Shown here: piece after piece, positions 52,474 to 63,180 of the stretch
Layout: each line of letters begins with the position of its first letter
How positions within the stretch are numbered: position 1 is the first letter of the stretch
Source of the DNA: Zygnema circumcarinatum SAG 698-1b
Taxonomy: Eukaryota > Plantae > Zygnematophyceae
Assembly: GCA_037447605.1 (NCBI GenBank)
Contig: CM074813.1
Coordinates: 2,108,001-2,172,000, forward strand
Reading direction: 5' to 3'
DNA length: 64,000 bases
Program-made: the position numbers and the translations under genes
The notes under the pieces: model-generated
Database searches by the model: none
What the model saw: the letters and a program-made list of their open reading frames with translations, nothing else
What the model was told of the DNA's origin: nothing

Positions 52474-53693
52474 CAGGCCTCAAATAGGGGATTTCGGCCT
52501 AAGATAGGGGACTGTCCCCTAAGTTGGACTGTCCCCTAAAAAACACTAAAATACGACATGTACGGATGAAGCCGCCTGCCTCCTGTTCGGCGGCTTGTGT
52601 ACACTTCCATGGTTTCGTAGCGGGAACTGCGTTTGTGAAGAAGATGGAGGGGCCGAAGTTCCAGCGTGGCCATGGCGGCAAGTTTGGTCGCAAGGTCACT
52701 CACTGGCAGGGAGGAACCCGGCAGCAGGCCTTGTGACTTCTCTAGTGTAGTGTTTTGCCCTCACTTTTGGGCGAGAAGAAAGGGTTGGCGGCAAGAGGAA
52801 ATGTGCGACTCGCTCGAAGTACTTTGATTGTTTCCGATCAGACAATTACGTGCAGCATCTCCATCAGCAGCATCAGTAAAGTGAGCCGAGTACAAAGAGT
52901 TTTAAGTCACCGTTAGAACGTGACGTTCAAGGATGTCGACCCACCTTGTGCCAATAATACTTTGAATGTTCATTTCGAAACCATCGACAAATCGGTAGTC
53001 GAAGTGATTATTGGAGAGATGCTCTTTCATCCCGATGAATTGGAAGGCGTTAGTGTGCGGCGTGCTCTAAGCTTGTTTGCCCACATCGTACTTGGTCGGT
53101 TGTGTTGGTCTTGCAGGTTCCATTTCGGCAAGCTGCTCGCTCAATTGGGTCGTTGAATGAGTAACTACATATCGTGATTGTCAAACGCAGAAGTGTTCTG
53201 ATTGATTGGTAAAAAAATCCAACCTATAATAGTTGACGAGTTTGCACTAGTTTCTAAAGCCGTGGTGTTATACCAACAACTAGAGTTCATGAGTGCAAAT
53301 GCAATTCATTTCACATTTTCTTACCAAAAAAATGCTTTTTTTAGGGCTTGTATGATATTTGAAGCTATATCACTCCAACTAACACCTCTTATTGGTCCAA
53401 CCGTGTCGGTGGACTTCCGCCGCTCCCTCCTCTCGATGTGCCTCACATCGGTGACCTTCGCGGCTGCTTCTAGGGGCTGCGTTGTGCGCCTAGGCGTAGT
53501 TTTCCGCTCTTAGCTTCTTTCTTTTGTGCCTAGGTCCTTTTGCGGCCAGTCCCTCGTGGTTCCGCATGCTGCTTTTGTTCATGTACATTTTGATGGCCTC
53601 GCCATCGTGAGTTCAATGCACTTTCACTTTTCCCAAATTTCCCATAAATAACCTATTTATGATATTTTAGGGGTATCTCCTATTTTAGGACTG
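52474..53693 (+). mobile_element. Older hAT deletion derivative of the same family as 4890-5753, with decayed N-terminal transposase sequence
   Basis: The 5' end CAGGCCTCAAATAGGGGATTTCGGCCTAAGATAGGGGACTGTCCCCTAA matches the reverse complement of 5700-5753. Remnants FGREERVGGKRKCATRSKYFDCFRSDNYVQHLHQQH and IDKSVVEVIIGEMLFHPDE carry stops and frameshifts. The 53200-53350 segment matches 4990-5160. Confidence 0.85.
53391..53630. repeat. Copy of the ~250-bp dispersed repeat inserted inside the hAT derivative (opposite orientation to the other copies)
   Basis: Reverse complement of 62405-62640; absent from the equivalent position of the 4890-5753 hAT copy. Confidence 0.8.
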
Positions 53694-53904
53694 GTCGTAT
53701 TTGTACGAATCTATCTCACTGGTGCCGTACCGTACGGTCCGGGCTGTACGGTAACAGCAGCAGCAGGAGCAGCAGTAGCGGCAGCCTGGTCCTCTCTCCC
53801 TCTCCATCTCCCTCTCCCGCTGCCTCTCCCTCTTCCTCCCCCGCGTCTCCTCCAGCTCGCTCGCTCGCTCGTTCGCGCGCCCTCCGGAGGGGGGGGGGGG
53901 CGCC

Positions 53905-56900
53905 ATGGAGCGTGCTCGGCCCGCACTGTGGATCGACTTCGTGCTGCTGCCCGAGCTGCTGGAAGAGCACCTGCGCGCCCTCGCGGACGGCCGCACGCGC
54001 CACCCCTCCGCGCCCGAACTCATATCTTCTTTCCTCGACCAGGTGCGCGCTAAGGTTTGCGGGCATGCCTGCATGAGGTATGGCGTGCATGGGTGCATGC
54101 TCTGGAACACACTTCTTGGGTCGGAATGAGAGGGACATGAATGGAAGCGCGAGATTACAGTCATGAGAAATGACAGTTGTCCATGATTGGGAAACATTTG
54201 GAACTCGAGTGAGTGCAAGTCATGCATAAATGTTCAAATTAGGCTCTATTTTTCTGCTAATCAGAAAGCCATGGGGGTAAGTTTTACAAGCAGTTGGGAA
54301 ATGAGCTAATTCTACAGCAATCAGATGACAAAATTAGCGAGCTCGATTAAAGGACTTCATTGAATGGAAGCAGTTTTTCCGTTTTAGTTGTTTTTTCTCG
54401 TTCGTGCTGCGAGCCCACATGCAACGGCAAAGCAAACAAAAAATCCATCCCATTTTCAATTGAATTTCTGTACGCAATTAATTAAGGAACATGTGTCCTT
54501 GTCTCTAATAGTTACACCGTTCGTCGTATCTAGGGTGGGCCACGCGCGAATTGCGAACTCTGTTTTTTACCCTGTTTACCTCTAATAGTATGGGCCATAC
54601 AAATTACGTAGCACTCCAATTGGTGTATGGCTTAAATAACGCGGGCCACATTATTACCCGTGGCGTAATTAGTGTGGGTTTTCAAGAATTTCATAATCAA
54701 GTTTCAGGTGAGAAGTGTTTGTATATATATGTATTTTATACTTATGTATTCATCCTCATGCATCCATATGCATACATATATACTATGTAAACCGGCCATA
54801 CTAATTGTGCTATAGAATTTTGGCCAAACAGCAATTGGTGTGGGCACACTAATTGAGTTCCCACACTTACAAGGATGAAGAATGTACAGGTTTGGGACGT
54901 TCGTTTTAACTTTGATCATTGTAGAATTCCCTGTTAGAATTTTTTTTAACGGTCATTTCTTTCAGGTGCCACGTAGGCTTCTCCAGAAATGGAAGGAGGA
55001 TGCGGGCTAACTACTCACCTAGGTTGAATACCCTCTTGGTTGTGTTTGGCGTTTCATTTCCACCCACAGAGCGAGCTTAAAGCATCAAAGATTGATCGAA
55101 TTTGTCGCCTTGACCACAACCATGCCCCTGCTCTTTCAATGTGACTCTGACTGTAACCGAGCCTGACTAGATACATATTTGCGTTGCACTTTTTGCCAGG
55201 CGGCTGCTGTGTCAAAAGCAACCCCTGCAGATTCTTCTCTCACAAAGTCAGCAGATGCAGAGAACCGCAGTTCCTCCAAGGAGGTGCAGTCTTCCATCTC
55301 AGGCTCGCTTCCGCCAGCACCCCCCAATGTGAACGCTCCCACAACATCCGTCACATTCCCTAAAGGCCCATTCGTGTCTCGAACTGCTGCGGTGTTGTGT
55401 GAACGCGCAGCTCAAGTGGCTGTGGCAGCTCGCCTCTCATTGGCGGACATAGAAACGCAACTGCCGTCTCGGCAGCAGCAGCTCACTCTCTTGCATGCTT
55501 TGGCCATCCACGATGCTCCGAGGGCTCTCATTCACGAATGCGATCTGCACCGTTGGATGGTGCACGCAGCACTGGACTCTCACCCTGTGGGTTCTGCAGC
55601 ACATGGTGCAGGGTTCAGGATAGCAGATGGGGGAGCTGAAAGCAGGGTAGAGGGGGAGAAAAGGGAGGGAGTGGGAGGGGGAGCGGGAGCGGGAGGGGGA
55701 GGGGGAGAGAAGGAGCTTGCAGCAAGGCTGCGGGAGATTGCTGAAAGCACCCGGGTGGGGAAGATAACTCCAGTGGCTCCGGCTTTTCGAGGAACAAATA
55801 TGGATTTGGAGGATGAGAATAAATCACTGGAGTTTCTGGAAAAAATATTATCAGAGGGGAATGATGATGATGGTGTGGGGAGGCTGGAGGAACGAGAAGA
55901 GGAGAGAAAGTGCGTGCAGGAGGGGAGAAGGTTGTCGGAAGGAGGGGAGTTAAGGGGAAAATATCTCTCCCAGCATTATCGAGGCTTGATTATGTATGAT
56001 GTTGCCGAAGTGCATTTTATGAGGCATAGGGTGGAGACTGCAAGAAGGCTGTTTTCTCGATGCTTGAGGCTGGTCAGGAGTGAAGAGCAAACCAGTCTGG
56101 TGTACAGGTCTGGCGAAGGTAGAAGTGCTGGTATTAAAATAGAACGGGAAACTGAAGTGGACCCGTCAAGATTGCGAGATGATATAAAGATGGAAGAAAA
56201 AGACATGGAGCAGGAAAGGGGACAAGCCGCAAATCTAGAAACTACAGAGAATATGAGGGATGTTGAAATGGAGACTGGTGACACAGAAGTAAACAGAAGC
56301 AAGCAGAAAAATCGAGCAAGTAGCGACGATACTCAGGAAGTATTGGCGGTTCAAGAAGAATTTGGAGAGAGTAGCAATGTTGAGAGAGTGTTAGTGGTGG
56401 GAGCGGATACTGAGGAGCCGGAAGCCGTGGGGGGGAGGAGAGAAGCTCGGATTGTAGGGGACATCGGTGAAGGACAAGGGAGTGCTGAAGTTCGACCGAT
56501 ATCAAATGAAGAAATTCCAAAAGATCGCCTTACGGGATTTTTGATTGCCTGCCAAATGCTTCTCGGGTATGATTCGGAGAATGCGGAAGGAAACACGAAT
56601 GTAGCTTACGAGTCAATTTCGAAGCTGGACAAATTGGGACTGCTTCCCCCTGACCAGGAGACCGTCATCAGGTGTGAAATGTTTAGGAAGAGGTGGAGGG
56701 AGGTGACGGAGAAGCGGGAGATGGCTGTAGAAGTAGGTGGGAAGGAGGGAGGAGGTGAGGAACGAGAGAAGACAGTGGACGCAATTGTTGGGGAAAAGCG
56801 GAAGATGGGGGATGCGGAGCAAGGGAGAATTTTAGAAATTAAACGAAGGAAAGTGGAATCAGAGGAGACAGAAACGGAACATGGGGAGTTGGGCATCGTG

Positions 56901-59900
56901 GAGTCCCTTATTGCTGACATTTTAAACGGCAATCTGGTTGATGAATATCGTGAGTTTCTCGAGTACGATGAAAGGCTCTCAGATGACATTCGTCAAAAGA
57001 TAGTGGCCATAAACTCTATTACGAAAGCAGCCTCTGGCCAATCGTTTGAGCATTTTCTTCTTATTAGCAGCTTGTTTGAAGGTAACGAGCATCTGGTAGA
57101 ATTCCTGCTGACGACAATCCATAGGATTGTGAGTTGCGAGGGAGGACATTTGGCGATTATTTCTCGTCTTAGGCAATTTGCAGAGTACGTATGCTGCATT
57201 CTGGATAATCAAACGTATTGGACTTTCGCAAATAACCACAACCTTCTTTCGACACGGAAATCCACAGATTTTTGCAATCAGCAAGCAAATGAAGAAGCAG
57301 GGCTGGGCAGTTTAAAATCAGAGTTTTCAAAAATAGACAATTTTCTCAGCCCATCAAGAGCTTCGGTCGAAGAAGACGTCGCTTTAGGAGGACCGGAATT
57401 AATTCTACGGATTATACACGGTACAAATGGGGTGAGTTTAGTTGCAAATAGCATCATAGCTGAAAAGGGGAGGCTTGAATTCTTAAAGGAAGACTCAGTG
57501 GCGAAGCTGAGAGCAGCTGAGGGATTAAGAAGGAAAGCTTGCGAAGTCGCTATAGGGGGTTTAAGGCAGAGGCTAAAGAATAACTGGGAGTTATGCACCT
57601 ATGAGTTGAAGTCGGCGAAAGATTTGTATGAGGTTGCGGAGAAATTGGTTTCTGGGGATTCACAGGCTGAGATGATGCAGTGGCTTATAGTGAAGGTTCT
57701 AAAGGCTGGCCCATTAGATCAATCCCAGAAAAAGAAGCGAAGTTTTGACGGTTCAGATATTGCAACGGAGGGAGAGCTGCAAGGAATCTCGCAACAAGAA
57801 GGTTTTGGTGAGCCGGAAAACAGAAGTCTAAAGAAATTAAGAATGGAGGAGACTAAGGATGTGGAAGATGCAGAAGCCAAGCAGAGAAAGAAGGAGCGAG
57901 AGATACTAAGGCAGCTAGAGTACGAGCAGGTGGAATTTTTCGCTGTACAGATGATAAACCAGGGCTTGTGGGAAGCTCTGGAGGAGTTTTGTGGGCGGGA
58001 GGAAGGGTTATACGAGTGTAGGGAGAGATTGCAAACTACACCTCATGACAACACAACAACTGGTGTTGAGTCTGCGGGAGAGAATAAGAACGAGGAGGAA
58101 AGAGAAGCCATGAAAGTTGACTCAGCCATGCGGATGAATAATGAAAGTGGGGAAGGGAGAGGTTTGAAGAGAAAGAGGAAGGCAAAGGTCATTCGCCTCT
58201 TGAGAGTTGCGTCATTGATTAATCGGATTGTGCATCTGAGCGATGTTGTTAATGCTTTAAAGCAAAAAAAATGTGGAGAAGAAGATGCCATAAATGTGAG
58301 TGGCGAGTTGTGGGAGAGCTATGAGGATTTCCTTTTTTTGCTCGCAGTACAGGGCTCCAATGAGCAGAGTGAGACAATTTTTACAAAGTGGAAGGATGCA
58401 GTTGGGACAGCTGGCAGGCAACAGAAAGGAGAAGAGGTGGCTGGAGAAGTACGAGTAGGGAGAGAGAGTGAGAGAGAGGAGGATGAGAGGGCGGCGCATG
58501 CAGAGAGAGTGCAAGGTAGGGAACCACATGCATGGGAGGGGGCAGAGGCGGCAGATTGCAGTGGAGGACGAGAAGTAGAGGTCACGGCTGAGAGGGGAGA
58601 GAGAGGAGATTCTAGAGAAATAAAGGTAGCTCGACTTAGAGGAGGTGGAACAGACACTGGCAAGGACGGAGAGGAGAAGCGAGGGCGAAGAAAATTGTCC
58701 GATCATGGAGGAGCGGAAGAGTCACAGAAGCACTGGGATGGATATAAATCTAAGGGAGAGAGCGAGGTTGGTAGACCAGGAAAGGGCAGGAGTGAGAAAA
58801 TTCATAGTGACAGGGGCAGCCATAGAGGAGGAGGGCAGGGGCGTGGCAGAGGGAGAGGCAAAGAAAGCAGAGGGAGAGGAGGGGAGCAAGCAGGAAAGGT
58901 GAAGGGGAGTGGGAGAGGAGGTTGGGATGATCTGGTTGGGGAACCGGAAGACGAAAAAGCGAAAGTGGAGATGGAAAGTGGGCCTTTGAAAGATAGCTCA
59001 ACGGTCGTAGAAACAAAGAAAGACACATCTCTACCCCTTCCCGGACTATCTCAGCCTACTTTTAAATCTCTTCCTCTCCTCTCCAAGCTTCATAATCCAC
59101 AAATACTTTCGATCATCATTGCATTGACTGCCGGGTGGCTCCATAGGTGCCACCTTGCAGGCCTCTCCAAATGGCCTCTCGCTATAGAGAGATATGGAGT
59201 CTTGGCAGAGACGACTGCAAGCGCGGTCTTGCTGGCAGTAGAAGTCAACGGAACAGAGAGCATGGAGGTGGCTCCACCAAGAGTCAACCCTGATTTTGGG
59301 CGAGAAGTGTTTCGAAAGCTGTTGGAGGAAGTGGTAGAGAGGGGGGCCGGAAGCAGGTGGGAAAGGTATGCGTGGCTGCTAGGGTTGGGAGACTTAGCCT
59401 TTGAGGAAGAGGACTATGAAAAGGCAATGCGACTTATTCTCCAGGTACGAACTCAGCTTGCTTTGATGATAAGCTGATTTTTTTGGTGTCAAAAGTTTGC
59501 CTCGACTCGAAGTCGCCCGTTCTCTTTTTCGTAGTGTGGGCAGTATACACCCCTCTTAAGTGTCCATAGTGGACTTGAACAACGACTCTCGAATCCCTCC
59601 CCCTCCCCATCCCTCTTCCCCTCCCCCTCCACCTCCCCTTCCCCCTCCCCCTCCNNNNNNNNNNCTCCCGTATGTTCTGAGATGTTTATCTGGAGCACTG
59701 TAGCATGCGACTGTGGGGTGTGCAGGCAGGAGCTCTCCTCACCAGCCACTACTGCAGTAGGCGCGGCGCCCTTCCTCGTGAAGTTTTCACGCCATGGCTT
59801 GTGAGTCTCAGGACCCATTCTCTGTCTGAGCTGCAGCCGGTCCTCCCCTTCTCTCTGCAACAATCCCTGAATGTCTCCGGAACAGAAACCCTTTTCTGTA

Positions 59901-60766
59901 ACTTTGTTGTTGCGTTGGTTTTGTCCGAACCAGTCCGTCTGAAGCGCCGTCCTTTCCTTAGCCTCAACTGCTTACCAGCGCACACTCAACACAGAAGCAG
60001 TCCTTTCGTTTATAGGAAGAACTCGCTCGCTCTCACCTTCCCGTCTATATCTATCTTTCTCTCTCTCTCTCTCTCTGTGTGTGTGTGCAGCTGCGGCGAA
60101 TGATCTCTGCTCTGCGGTCCCTGGGGGCGGGCCTCCCGGCGGCGGCCCTCTGCCAGGCGGTGCCGGGAGGCTGCGACTACGAGGCGGCCTTCCGCGCCCT
60201 CCAGGAGGCGCCGCCGCCCGGGGGGGGAGGGGGCGCCCGGGAGACGCTCGCGTACTTGGACTGCCTCTGGGAGGTCACGCACTCACTCAATCACTCACTC
60301 ACTCACTCACTCACTCACTCAGCCAGTCACTCAGTCAGTCAGTCGGTCTGTCGGGGCCGGCTCGCACAGAAAGTGGTGACAGACAGGACGGCATATGACA
60401 TGAAGCGGCGGCATGAATTGAAGCGAAAGTTTGTTCAGATGGGGCTTCCTTCGTTGCTTGCAAGTGATGGTTTTGAGAGTCTCTCTCTCTTTCTCTCTCA
60501 CTCTCTCCCTCCTCTCTCCCCCTCCTCTCTCTCTCTCTGTCTGTGTGCGTTGGCGCAAGCAGGTGCCCCTCCTGGAGCTCCTCGTGTACCTCCACTCCCG
60601 CGCGGGCGACGAGGCGCGCGTGGCGGCCCTCGCGGCGCTCCTCCGGCGGGCGGCGCTCAACGCGCACAACCCGCCCGCCGTGCGGTCCGCGCACATAGAG
60701 CTGGCGGAGCACCGCCTCATGCGGAGGCTCGCGGGGGACTTTCTCGTTGGGAGGCGGCCTCTCTAA
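53905..60766 (+). CDS. INTS8: Integrator complex subunit 8-like protein
   Basis: Exons 53905-54042, 55200-59444, ~59727-59800, ~60091-60273, ~60562-60766. N-terminus WIDFVLLPELLEEHLR...PSAPELISSFLDQ; C-terminus MISALRSLG...AAALCQ...DYEAAFRALQ...YLDCLWE|VPLLELLVYLHSRAGDE...LNAHNP. Both match my recollection of animal INTS8 termini. Confidence 0.82.
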
Positions 60767-61159: not shown

Positions 61160-62397
61160 ATTTTCACACCTTTTTTGTCTATATACACCTTTTTTTTGCC
61201 GGGCAGATTTTATTTTAGAAAAAGAAAGGGTTAAAAACCCATTTTGTGCAGATTAGATTTGAGTGCGTGTACCCACCCCACAAATTTTATTCAGAATAAA
61301 CGTTAACAGTAGGAAAATGCTACTTACACATCTGTTTTGGCGAGATACGCTACGACGTCTTTTTATCAGTTCAATGACTTCTGCAAGCGAGCTGAAAAGG
61401 AAGTGGCATTGATCTCACGCATGGCGATGATGCCATCAAATGTACATGGACAAAATCATCGGCATGGGGAACCACAAGGAACTGGGCGCAAAGGACCTAA
61501 GCACAAAAGAAAAAAGCGAGGAGCTGAAACCTACGCTTAGGCTCAACAACGCGTCAAGCCCTCCCACGAAGCAGCCGCGAAGGTGTAGCGGTAAAAGTCG
61601 CCTTTTGCTTCTTGAGTTGAACCTTCATAGACGCTCTCAAATTTAATCTGCATATAAAATGGGTTTTAGGGTTTTTAGCCCTTTTTTTTCTAAAACAAAA
61701 TCTGCCCGGCTGAAAAAGGTGTTTGTCGACAAAAATGGTGAAAAGTCTGTCAAGGCCGACTCGCACGTGCGAGTGCGCGCGTCCCTCGGGTCGAGATCTC
61801 CACAAAATTATGAGCTGGAGCGGGCAGCCTGTGAAAAACTACAGCCAATCACCATCGGCCACGTGTTCCTTTGTATGACGTAGCAAATTTTGATTGGTCC
61901 AAGCTCTGAATGTACAAAGTTTTGCGTTTCCTCGAAGTTGCGACCGTAGGACTCTTGTACGGAACCACTTTTGAGACGGCTTTGACGGGACACGTGGACT
62001 CGTGCCATTCGCTGGGACCGAGCCCGGCTGCAGATCTAACGGTTGCCGTGGGCGATTTGCAATGGACTCGACGGCCGCGATTCACACCACGTGTGGAGGA
62101 CGCACACCTCGAACGATCTTGTGGCGGACGGATCTTCCGCTCCGAGCTGATTCGGGCAGGCCGATATTTTCTTATCTCAAAAAAGAAATTCAGGGGGACG
62201 AGATATTCAAATCAAATTAACGGGGTATCATTTTCCTTTTTTTCATTTCGTTCTTGTTTTGCAAAAATAAAATCTGCCTTGTATCGATTCCAAAAAGGTG
62301 TGAAAAAAGCATTTTCTGTTTTTAAACCTTTTTAAAATCTGCCCGGCCTGGAAGGGTTGTTTTGATCCAAAAAAGGCATGGAAATAACACTACCCTT
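61160..62397. mobile_element. Rearranged copies and fragments of the foldback element family, plus a ~250-bp repeat copy (about 61395-61590)
   Basis: The right arm ends GGAAATAACACTACCCTT at 62397. 61755-61950 is the reverse complement of about 3450-3650, while 61980-62397 is colinear with 3650-4073. Confidence 0.75.
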
Positions 62398-62404
62398 TTT
62401 GATT

Positions 62405-62640
62405 GGAGGAGAAAATTTCATTGAACTCACGATGGCGAGGCCATCAAAATGTACATGGACAAAAGCAAAATGCGGAACCACGAGTGACTGGCCGCAAAAG
62501 GATCTAGGCACAAACGATAGAAGCTAAGAGCGGAAAACTACGCCTAGGCGCACAACGCAGCCCCTAGAAGCAGCCACGAAGGTCACCGATGTGAGGCACA
62601 TCGCGAGCTGCGGAAGTCCACCGACACGGTTGGACCAATC
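62405..62640. repeat. Longest copy of the ~250-bp dispersed repeat
   Basis: TTGAACTCACGATGGCGAGGCCATC...CCGACACGGTTGGACCAAT, nearly colinear with 53391-53630 (reverse complement). Confidence 0.8.
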
Positions 62641-63180
62641 AAAAATTTCCACGTCAAAAATGTAACACGTGGCATATGTTGATTGGTTGGGAGCTAATCC
62701 CAGATCTCGAGATCTCGGGCCGAGGGACGCGCGCACTCGCAAGTGCAATCCGGCTTTGAGGGGATTCGTGGGCGCTTTCCATTCGCTGAGATCGAGCCCG
62801 GCTGCAGATCGAACGGTCATTTGCTGTGGTGCGATCTGGGAGGGAATCGACAGCTGCGATTGACACACACGTGTGAAGGACGGACACCCGCGAACGATCT
62901 CGTGGCGGACGGATCTTCCGCTCCGAGCGGATTCGGGCAGGCAGATATTTCTTTCCCTCAAAAAAAAAAAATCAGGAAGGCGGGATACAGTATTCAAAAT
63001 GCGGTGACGGGGTATCATTTTCCTTGGTTAGCAAAAATATAATCAGCCGACGGAAGAAGGTGGGTATCGATTCCAAAAAGGTGTGAAAAAAGCATTTTTC
63101 GTTTTTAATCCCTTTGGAAATCTGCCCGGCCGGGAAGGGGTGTTTGGATCCAAAAAAGGGGTGGAAATAACACTACCCTT
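62630..63180. mobile_element. Internal part and right arm of another foldback element copy
   Basis: Colinear with about 3490-4073; ends GGGGTGGAAATAACACTACCCTT at 63180. Confidence 0.8.

Follow-up and report, generated by a model that had tools for sequence, protein, structure and literature searches.

A five-exon INTS8 gene in Zygnema

A 64,000-nt stretch of the Zygnema circumcarinatum SAG 698-1b genome (assembly GCA_037447605.1, contig CM074813.1, positions 2,108,001 to 2,172,000; hereafter the window, whose own numbering is used throughout) carries on its forward strand a gene for INTS8, the Integrator subunit that in animals takes part in binding protein phosphatase 2A (PP2A). The gene comprises five coding exons between 53905 and 60766, and the interval 53905-54042 is confirmed as the first of them. 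This exon encodes a WIDF motif at the place of the animal WFEF motif, which makes the protein a candidate for PP2A coupling in the plant lineage.

The coding sequence totals 1,614 codons, all of them open, and every junction is phase 0, as established by reading the downstream frames and placing GT..AG introns that preserve the frame. Exon 1 (53905-54042, plus strand, 46 codons) opens with the ATG at 53905, the earliest possible start after an in-frame stop. Its 46-aa peptide, MERARPALWIDFVLLPELLEEHLRALADGRTRHPSAPELISSFLDQ (opening MERARPALWIDFVLLPELLEEHLR and closing SSFLDQ), lies exactly where a preliminary description of the window had placed it, and the sequence GTGCGC adjoins its end at 54042. 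The exon encodes an N-terminal helix with W-I-D-F, LLEEHLR and LISSFLDQ, in which WIDF occupies residues 9-12 of the protein (53929-53940). Intron 1 (54043-55199; 1,157 nt, GT..AG, phase 0) separates it from exon 2 (55200-59444; 4,245 nt, 1,415 codons), which is defined by an open frame, RNA contigs and orthologue alignment, and which holds the remainder of an N-terminal tetratricopeptide repeat (TPR)-like domain, a middle domain and the beginning of the TPR_INTS8 domain.

The 3' part of the gene consists of three short exons. Intron 2 (59445-59725; 281 nt, GT..AG) contains a 10-N assembly gap at 59655-59664. Exon 3 (59726-59800; 25 codons, AGALLTSHYCSRRGALPREVFTPWL) is joined to exon 2 in RNA, and its counterpart in every orthologue is the AGAIRS..FTPWV block, to which it aligns. 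Beyond it lie intron 3 (59801-60090; 290 nt, GT..AG), exon 4 (60091-60273; 61 codons, LRRMISALRSLGAG...AYLDCLWE), intron 4 (60274-60562; 289 nt, GTCACG..CAG) and exon 5 (60563-60766; 67 codons plus the TAA stop, coding to 60763), which encodes the end of the TPR_INTS8 domain (VPLLELLVYLHSRAGDE...LNAHNPPAVR...). Exon 4 is identified by its Pfam TPR_INTS8 match and by orthologue alignment. RNA mapping covered 53850-59650, and introns 3 and 4 are placed by their splice signals, the reading frame and the gap-free alignment of the flanking exons with orthologues; at intron 4 the junction of WE with VPLLELL agrees with WEVPILELL in the orthologues and WDVTILEYL in human INTS8.

Exon 2 contains inserts rich in glutamate, lysine, arginine and glycine, one of them RGG-like, at about residues 300-430, 500-560, 840-900 and 1075-1260. 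Bryophyte orthologues do not have them, and some of the insertion sites are common to the Mesotaenium protein. Base composition is uneven within the gene: GC content at third codon positions (GC3) is 0.83-0.94 in exons 1, 4 and 5 and 0.47 in exon 2, whose coding strand is 63% purine.

Expression and integrity of the gene

Five public RNA runs of the same organism contain the stretch, and the contigs of three of them (X1, X2 and X3, from two studies) were mapped. A GT..AG joint from 54042 to 55200, skipping 1,157 nt, is present in the contigs of all three runs, so exon 1 is a real, spliced and expressed exon. In X2 and X3, intron 1 is read at about one third of the exon depth; in X1 its depth is far lower again. 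A single ungapped contig piece in each of X2 and X3 spans 55196-59445, which identifies the 4.2-kb exon 2 as a single exon in RNA. Past 59445, the sequence of all three runs continues as CAGGAGCTCTCCTCACCAGCC..., the start of exon 3 at 59726.

These data bear on the alternative that the locus holds a gene copy in decay, or one wrongly assembled, without a functional protein product. The 10-N gap, the strong GC3 contrast between exons and the repeats that flank the gene would all fit such a copy. Against this stand the fully open 1,614 codons with their four phase-compatible GT..AG introns, the position of the gap within intron 2, an intron bridged by RNA contigs, the spliced RNA in two studies and the retention of conserved family residues. 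A decayed or mis-assembled copy is thus highly improbable.

Immediately ahead of the start codon (53780-53904) lie CT-rich sequence, a CGCT repeat and about 12 consecutive G residues, and one X1 contig breaks at this G run. An X3 contig of 2,416 nt (depth 113) covers exon 1 to its donor site and extends more than 2 kb upstream of 53850; overlap with a neighbouring transcript may be one explanation of this extension.

Membership of the INTS8 family

Searches and structure predictions were run on exon pieces, with orthologues standing in for the complete N-terminal domain. With the pieces scanned apart, Pfam family PF25756 (TPR_INTS8) was matched three times: by the end of exon 2 (profile positions 306-351, 13.7 bits), by exon 4 (376-413, 21.8 bits, E 8.9e-05) and by exon 5 (430-485, 28.1 bits, over the gathering score of 27). 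The three matches are collinear, successive coding pieces falling on successive profile positions. The C-terminal TPR_INTS8 domain characteristic of INTS8 is therefore present in the Zygnema protein, and among orthologues this match reaches E 4.7e-43; precomputed Pfam annotations assign TPR_INTS8 and TPR_INTS8_3 to most of them. The earlier suggestion that the last exons match the C-terminal helical region of INTS8 thus holds for the end of exon 2, exon 4 and exon 5. A weak generic-TPR label, obtained from a Pfam scan of the whole 1,432-aa open reading frame, was discarded; the INTS8 matches emerged once the pieces were scanned apart.

A reciprocal test further supports the assignment. A profile built from seven orthologues was compared with all PDB chain sequences, and human INTS8 (7cun_H and nine other entries) was the sole significant match (E 4.7e-37; next E 0.56). 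The match extends over four collinear stretches: profile 16-57 against human 22-59, a short RLAGF/RLAGY block, 540-631 against 337-433, and 1178-1342 against 832-991, the last scoring 111 bits. A profile restricted to the N-terminal 400 positions also ranked INTS8 first in the PDB (E 0.014, three collinear stretches). Because both profiles lead to human INTS8, membership in the INTS8 family, as proposed in the preliminary description, is well supported at the level of sequence comparison.

The protein might instead be an unrelated TPR/PCI-like helical-repeat protein that resembles WFEF by chance. Single-exon comparisons with the PDB are weak enough to allow this: phmmer returned nothing useful with exon 1, exon 4 or the long open reading frame holding exon 2, and the best match of exon 5 was human INTS8 937-981 at E 1.6. 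In addition, the ESM Atlas look-alikes of exon 2 belong to generic TPR families, with scores of at most 0.88. The profile matches, on the other hand, single out INTS8 and run collinearly along the entire protein. An ESM Atlas search with the C-terminus of the Diphasiastrum orthologue gave INTS8 clusters dominated by arthropods as the nearest named ones. A large streptophyte INTS8 cluster was not among the matches listed for that query.

In overall organization, the Zygnema protein would be an all-helical TPR-like scaffold with the three collinear regions of animal INTS8, namely an N-terminal domain headed by a W-x-[DE]-[FY] helix, a middle region and a C-terminal TPR_INTS8 domain, and it would be enlarged by lineage-specific disordered inserts. 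It resembles human INTS8 in its middle block (profile 540-631 against 337-433) and in its C-terminal TPR_INTS8 domain, and differs in length, 1,614 aa against 995 aa, owing to the long charged and RGG-rich inserts. Pairwise identity between the Zygnema and animal proteins is low, so significance is reached by profiles only.

An N-terminal motif corresponding to WFEF

The N-terminal likeness centers on the first helix. In the profile alignment, slWiDfLLLPekLeEHl...PspaeLitvFLeqA lies over human TCWFEFLLEESLLEKHLRK...PAPVQLIVQFLEQA, with WiDfLLLPekLeEHl facing WFEFLLEESLLEKHL, so that WIDF corresponds to human W24-F-E-F27. Local alignment of exon 1 with human INTS8 22-59 scored 61; shuffled sequences averaged 20.4 (standard deviation 4.3), and none of 20,000 reached 61 (z ~9). 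This alignment opens at the W of WIDF/WFEF and closes at FL[DE]Q (human 24-59). Chance does not explain this resemblance to the N-terminus of human INTS8. The shared elements, a W-x-[DE]-F helix followed by LLE-HL and LI--FL[ED]Q, stand at equal distance from the start in the human and Drosophila proteins (7CUN_H, 7PKS_h, 7YCX_H, 8RC4_h) and in the Zygnema protein.

All orthologues with an intact N-terminus have W-I-[DE]-[FY] at this position: WIDY in most mosses, WIDF in Sphagnum, liverworts, Diphasiastrum and Mesotaenium, and WIEF in Selaginella. In an 18-row alignment the W and the I are at least 90% invariant. A WIDF-type motif is therefore conserved across Zygnematophyceae, mosses, liverworts and lycophytes. 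As in INTS8, the motif stands at the start of helix 1, with two of its four residues conservatively replaced (WFEF in animals, WIDF in Zygnema).

Structural comparison gave the same correspondence. An AlphaFold2 model of Diphasiastrum residues 1-390 (predicted template modelling score 0.69) places the motif in the first helix. With this N-domain model, the top Foldseek match was an INTS8 chain from an Integrator-PP2A structure, but only at E 0.014; the clear separation came from VIA-align, which returned 8rc4_h, 7ycx_H, 7pks_h and 7cun_H at Z 15.8, 15.3, 14.9 and 13.6, followed by an unrelated TPR protein at 9.3. The lycophyte orthologue thus has the N-terminal TPR-like domain of human and Drosophila INTS8 (8rc4_h: Z 15.8, root-mean-square deviation 4.4 over 232 residues), and the Zygnema protein probably shares it. 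The structural range opens at model residue 19 and human residue 22, and Diphasiastrum W21 consequently falls on human W24. The proposed equivalence of WIDF and WFEF is borne out by the hidden Markov model alignment, the shuffle test, the structural alignment and the presence of the motif in every intact orthologue. With the INTS8 match standing 6 Z units over other TPR folds for the Diphasiastrum model, and with no shuffle reaching the N-terminal score, an unrelated TPR/PCI-like protein is barely credible and is refuted so far as sequence evidence allows.

Orthologues and lineage distribution

An exhaustive phmmer search of 1.84 billion cluster representatives with exon 2 residues 1-1080 gave 13 matches at E <=0.001 (best 1.6e-40), among them Riccia fluitans, Diphasiastrum complanatum, Mesotaenium endlicherianum and, via a cluster member, Physcomitrium patens. 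Two further searches, with the seven-orthologue profile and with the C-terminal 305 residues of Diphasiastrum, added Ceratodon, Sphagnum, Riccia sorocarpa, Marchantia paleacea, Calypogeia, Selaginella and some transcript and metagenome sequences; with the Diphasiastrum query, E-values were 1e-89 to 1e-112 for bryophytes and 3.5e-78 for Selaginella. Residues 560-900 of exon 2 gave no match in a word-index search. The five exons are collinear with full-length orthologues from the first residue to the last.

The streptophyte orthologues (such as Physcomitrium patens A0A7I4AM66, Riccia fluitans KAL2653025.1, Diphasiastrum complanatum KAJ7548740.1, Selaginella LOC9634489 and Mesotaenium ME000208S02890) share with the Zygnema protein the W-I-[DE]-[FY] motif and the blocks TAxLLCERAA, DVAEVHFMRGR, RLAGFIxAC, AGWLHRC and LNAHNP. 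They differ from it in overall sequence, with identities of 31-38% in exon 2 and 52-59% in the small exons; exon 1 is 59% identical to the Diphasiastrum N-terminus. Mesotaenium has some insertion sites in common with Zygnema, whose inserts are larger. In a maximum-likelihood tree of 17 sequences, built without an outgroup and with Zygnema represented by exon 2 only, Zygnema and Mesotaenium, both long-branched, pair apart from the land-plant group (99/100 support).

The family already carries an automatic name, "INTS8 TPR repeats domain-containing protein", in UniProt/UniRef entries for Physcomitrium and Riccia. The Zygnema gene therefore joins a known family, and its lineage pattern is what merits testing. 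The preliminary description had stated that no characterized plant INTS8 is known. As to published work this stands, since no plant INTS8 study or phylogenetic survey of Integrator subunits was found in the literature searched; as to the family itself it needs qualifying, given the automatic names in a moss and a liverwort.

No fern, gymnosperm or angiosperm INTS8 orthologue was found in the three protein searches, which likewise did not recover metazoan INTS8, and the earlier suggestion that angiosperms lost PP2A-coupled attenuation or diverged from it is compatible with this result within that limit. The failure of word-index searches to recover metazoan INTS8 indicates that they are blind to relatives sharing few exact 5-mers. 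By sequence searching, the pattern shows seed plants apparently without an INTS8 conserved at the level seen between bryophytes and lycophytes; loss itself is not proven.

Several further sequences are INTS8-like. Logan contigs of SRR32617117, SRR32617110 and SRR33208241 (L001-L003) represent full-length or near-full-length INTS8 transcripts; the two transcript orthologues from these runs (P0006 and P0005) cluster weakly with lycophytes and could widen the family to other vascular plants. Two INTS8-like fragments from JGI metagenomes (P0012 and P0035) are labelled "phage gp36-like protein", an apparent mis-annotation of eukaryotic, moss-like sequence.

A candidate Integrator-PP2A module in streptophytes

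In animals, INTS2, INTS5, INTS6 and INTS8 jointly bind and position PP2A (PMC11062913), and replacing the WFEF residues of INTS8 by alanines, as summarized in PMC8091971, takes PP2A off Integrator while the other subunits stay. By analogy, it is rather probable that the Zygnema gene encodes an INTS8 orthologue with PP2A coupling. As in animals, such a protein would belong, together with INTS5, INTS2 and INTS6, to a core module of Integrator, and would bind the PP2A A/C dimer through its N-terminal helix. Integrator would then dephosphorylate the RNA polymerase II (Pol II) carboxy-terminal domain together with elongation factors, favoring early termination and 3'-end cleavage. On this proposal plants and animals would owe the module to their common ancestor, and on the way to seed plants it would have disappeared or been altered past recognition.

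This proposal can be set against the Arabidopsis DSP complex, a five-protein small nuclear RNA (snRNA) 3'-end processor composed of DSP1-4, with INT7-, INT3-, INT4- and INT9-like proteins, and CPSF73-I (PMC5079582; PMC10533338). This composition agrees with the earlier statement that the complex holds homologues of only some Integrator subunits (PMC5079582), and the same source reports that many INT subunits are missing in plants. The complex resembles the proposed Zygnema module in being a Pol II-linked set of Integrator-related proteins in the plant lineage (PMC5079582), and differs in having neither an INTS8-like protein nor a phosphatase module. A 2022 review describes Integrator as restricted to metazoans (PMC9006982).

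Alternatively, the Zygnema protein could be a true INTS8 orthologue that works without PP2A: it would be purely a scaffold, perhaps alongside an INTS5-like protein, in an Integrator/DSP complex of plant type that forms snRNA 3' ends, its motif being kept for folding or for contact with another subunit. The DSP complex, as the sole characterized Integrator-like complex of plants, is without a phosphatase module (PMC5079582), two of the four motif positions differ from those of animals, and in the model the motif falls within the opening helix of a packed helical repeat, which makes a structural role plausible. This view nevertheless has to accommodate the animal mutants, in which changing exactly these four residues removes PP2A and leaves the other subunits in place (PMC8091971). 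Plants and human also share the next block (LLE-HL ... LI--FL[ED]Q), as would be expected if an interface had been retained. To our knowledge, moreover, PP2A A and C are universal in plants. A PP2A-free INTS8 is accordingly judged unlikely, though it has to be weighed seriously beside the favored reading of an orthologue coupled to PP2A.

Several observations weigh against PP2A coupling, or against the lineage history drawn from it. The substitutions at motif positions 2 and 3 (I for F, D for E) depart from the animal residues, and the motif could be conserved for packing helix 1 on the solenoid and not for PP2A contact. The animal mechanism may not transfer whole to plants, which are reported to lack NELF-type pausing. 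The Zygnema protein itself has a long branch, 31-38% identity to other streptophytes and large inserts, and a poor model of the N-terminal part of its exon 2, built without exon 1 (mean predicted local distance difference test score 55), gave only a tie among TPR folds, INTS8 chains (Z 8.3) included. The absence of seed-plant matches rests on searches that missed metazoan INTS8, and the exhaustive phmmer search with the divergent Zygnema query missed Selaginella.

The evolutionary extension of PP2A coupling is accordingly put forward tentatively, as possible but somewhat less than probable: streptophyte algae, bryophytes and lycophytes would keep a working Integrator-PP2A module, PP2A-coupled early termination by Pol II would predate the plant-animal split, and its loss toward seed plants would have left the small DSP complex. 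An expressed INTS8 with the four-residue motif, kept from a streptophyte alga through mosses, liverworts and lycophytes, speaks for an ancient origin of Integrator's phosphatase arm, and its seeming absence from seed plants points to a loss that could be dated. With one gene and one motif, tractable bryophytes would offer a handle on whether plants ever used PP2A-coupled Pol II attenuation.

Sequences flanking the gene

An Rfam scan of the whole 64-kb window and a Pfam scan of the neighboring upstream open reading frames gave no match. The INTS8 coding region lies between two inverted copies of a dispersed repeat (53430-53624 and 62413-62607; 195 nt, 94% complementary), at distances of about 280 nt on the upstream side and about 1.6 kb on the downstream side. 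Both copies are marked by short open reading frames with near-identical peptides (MPRSFCGQSLVVPH..). Downstream of the gene, the interval 61977-63180 also contains a direct repeat pair about 780 bp apart, which consists of three collinear blocks at 85-91% identity.

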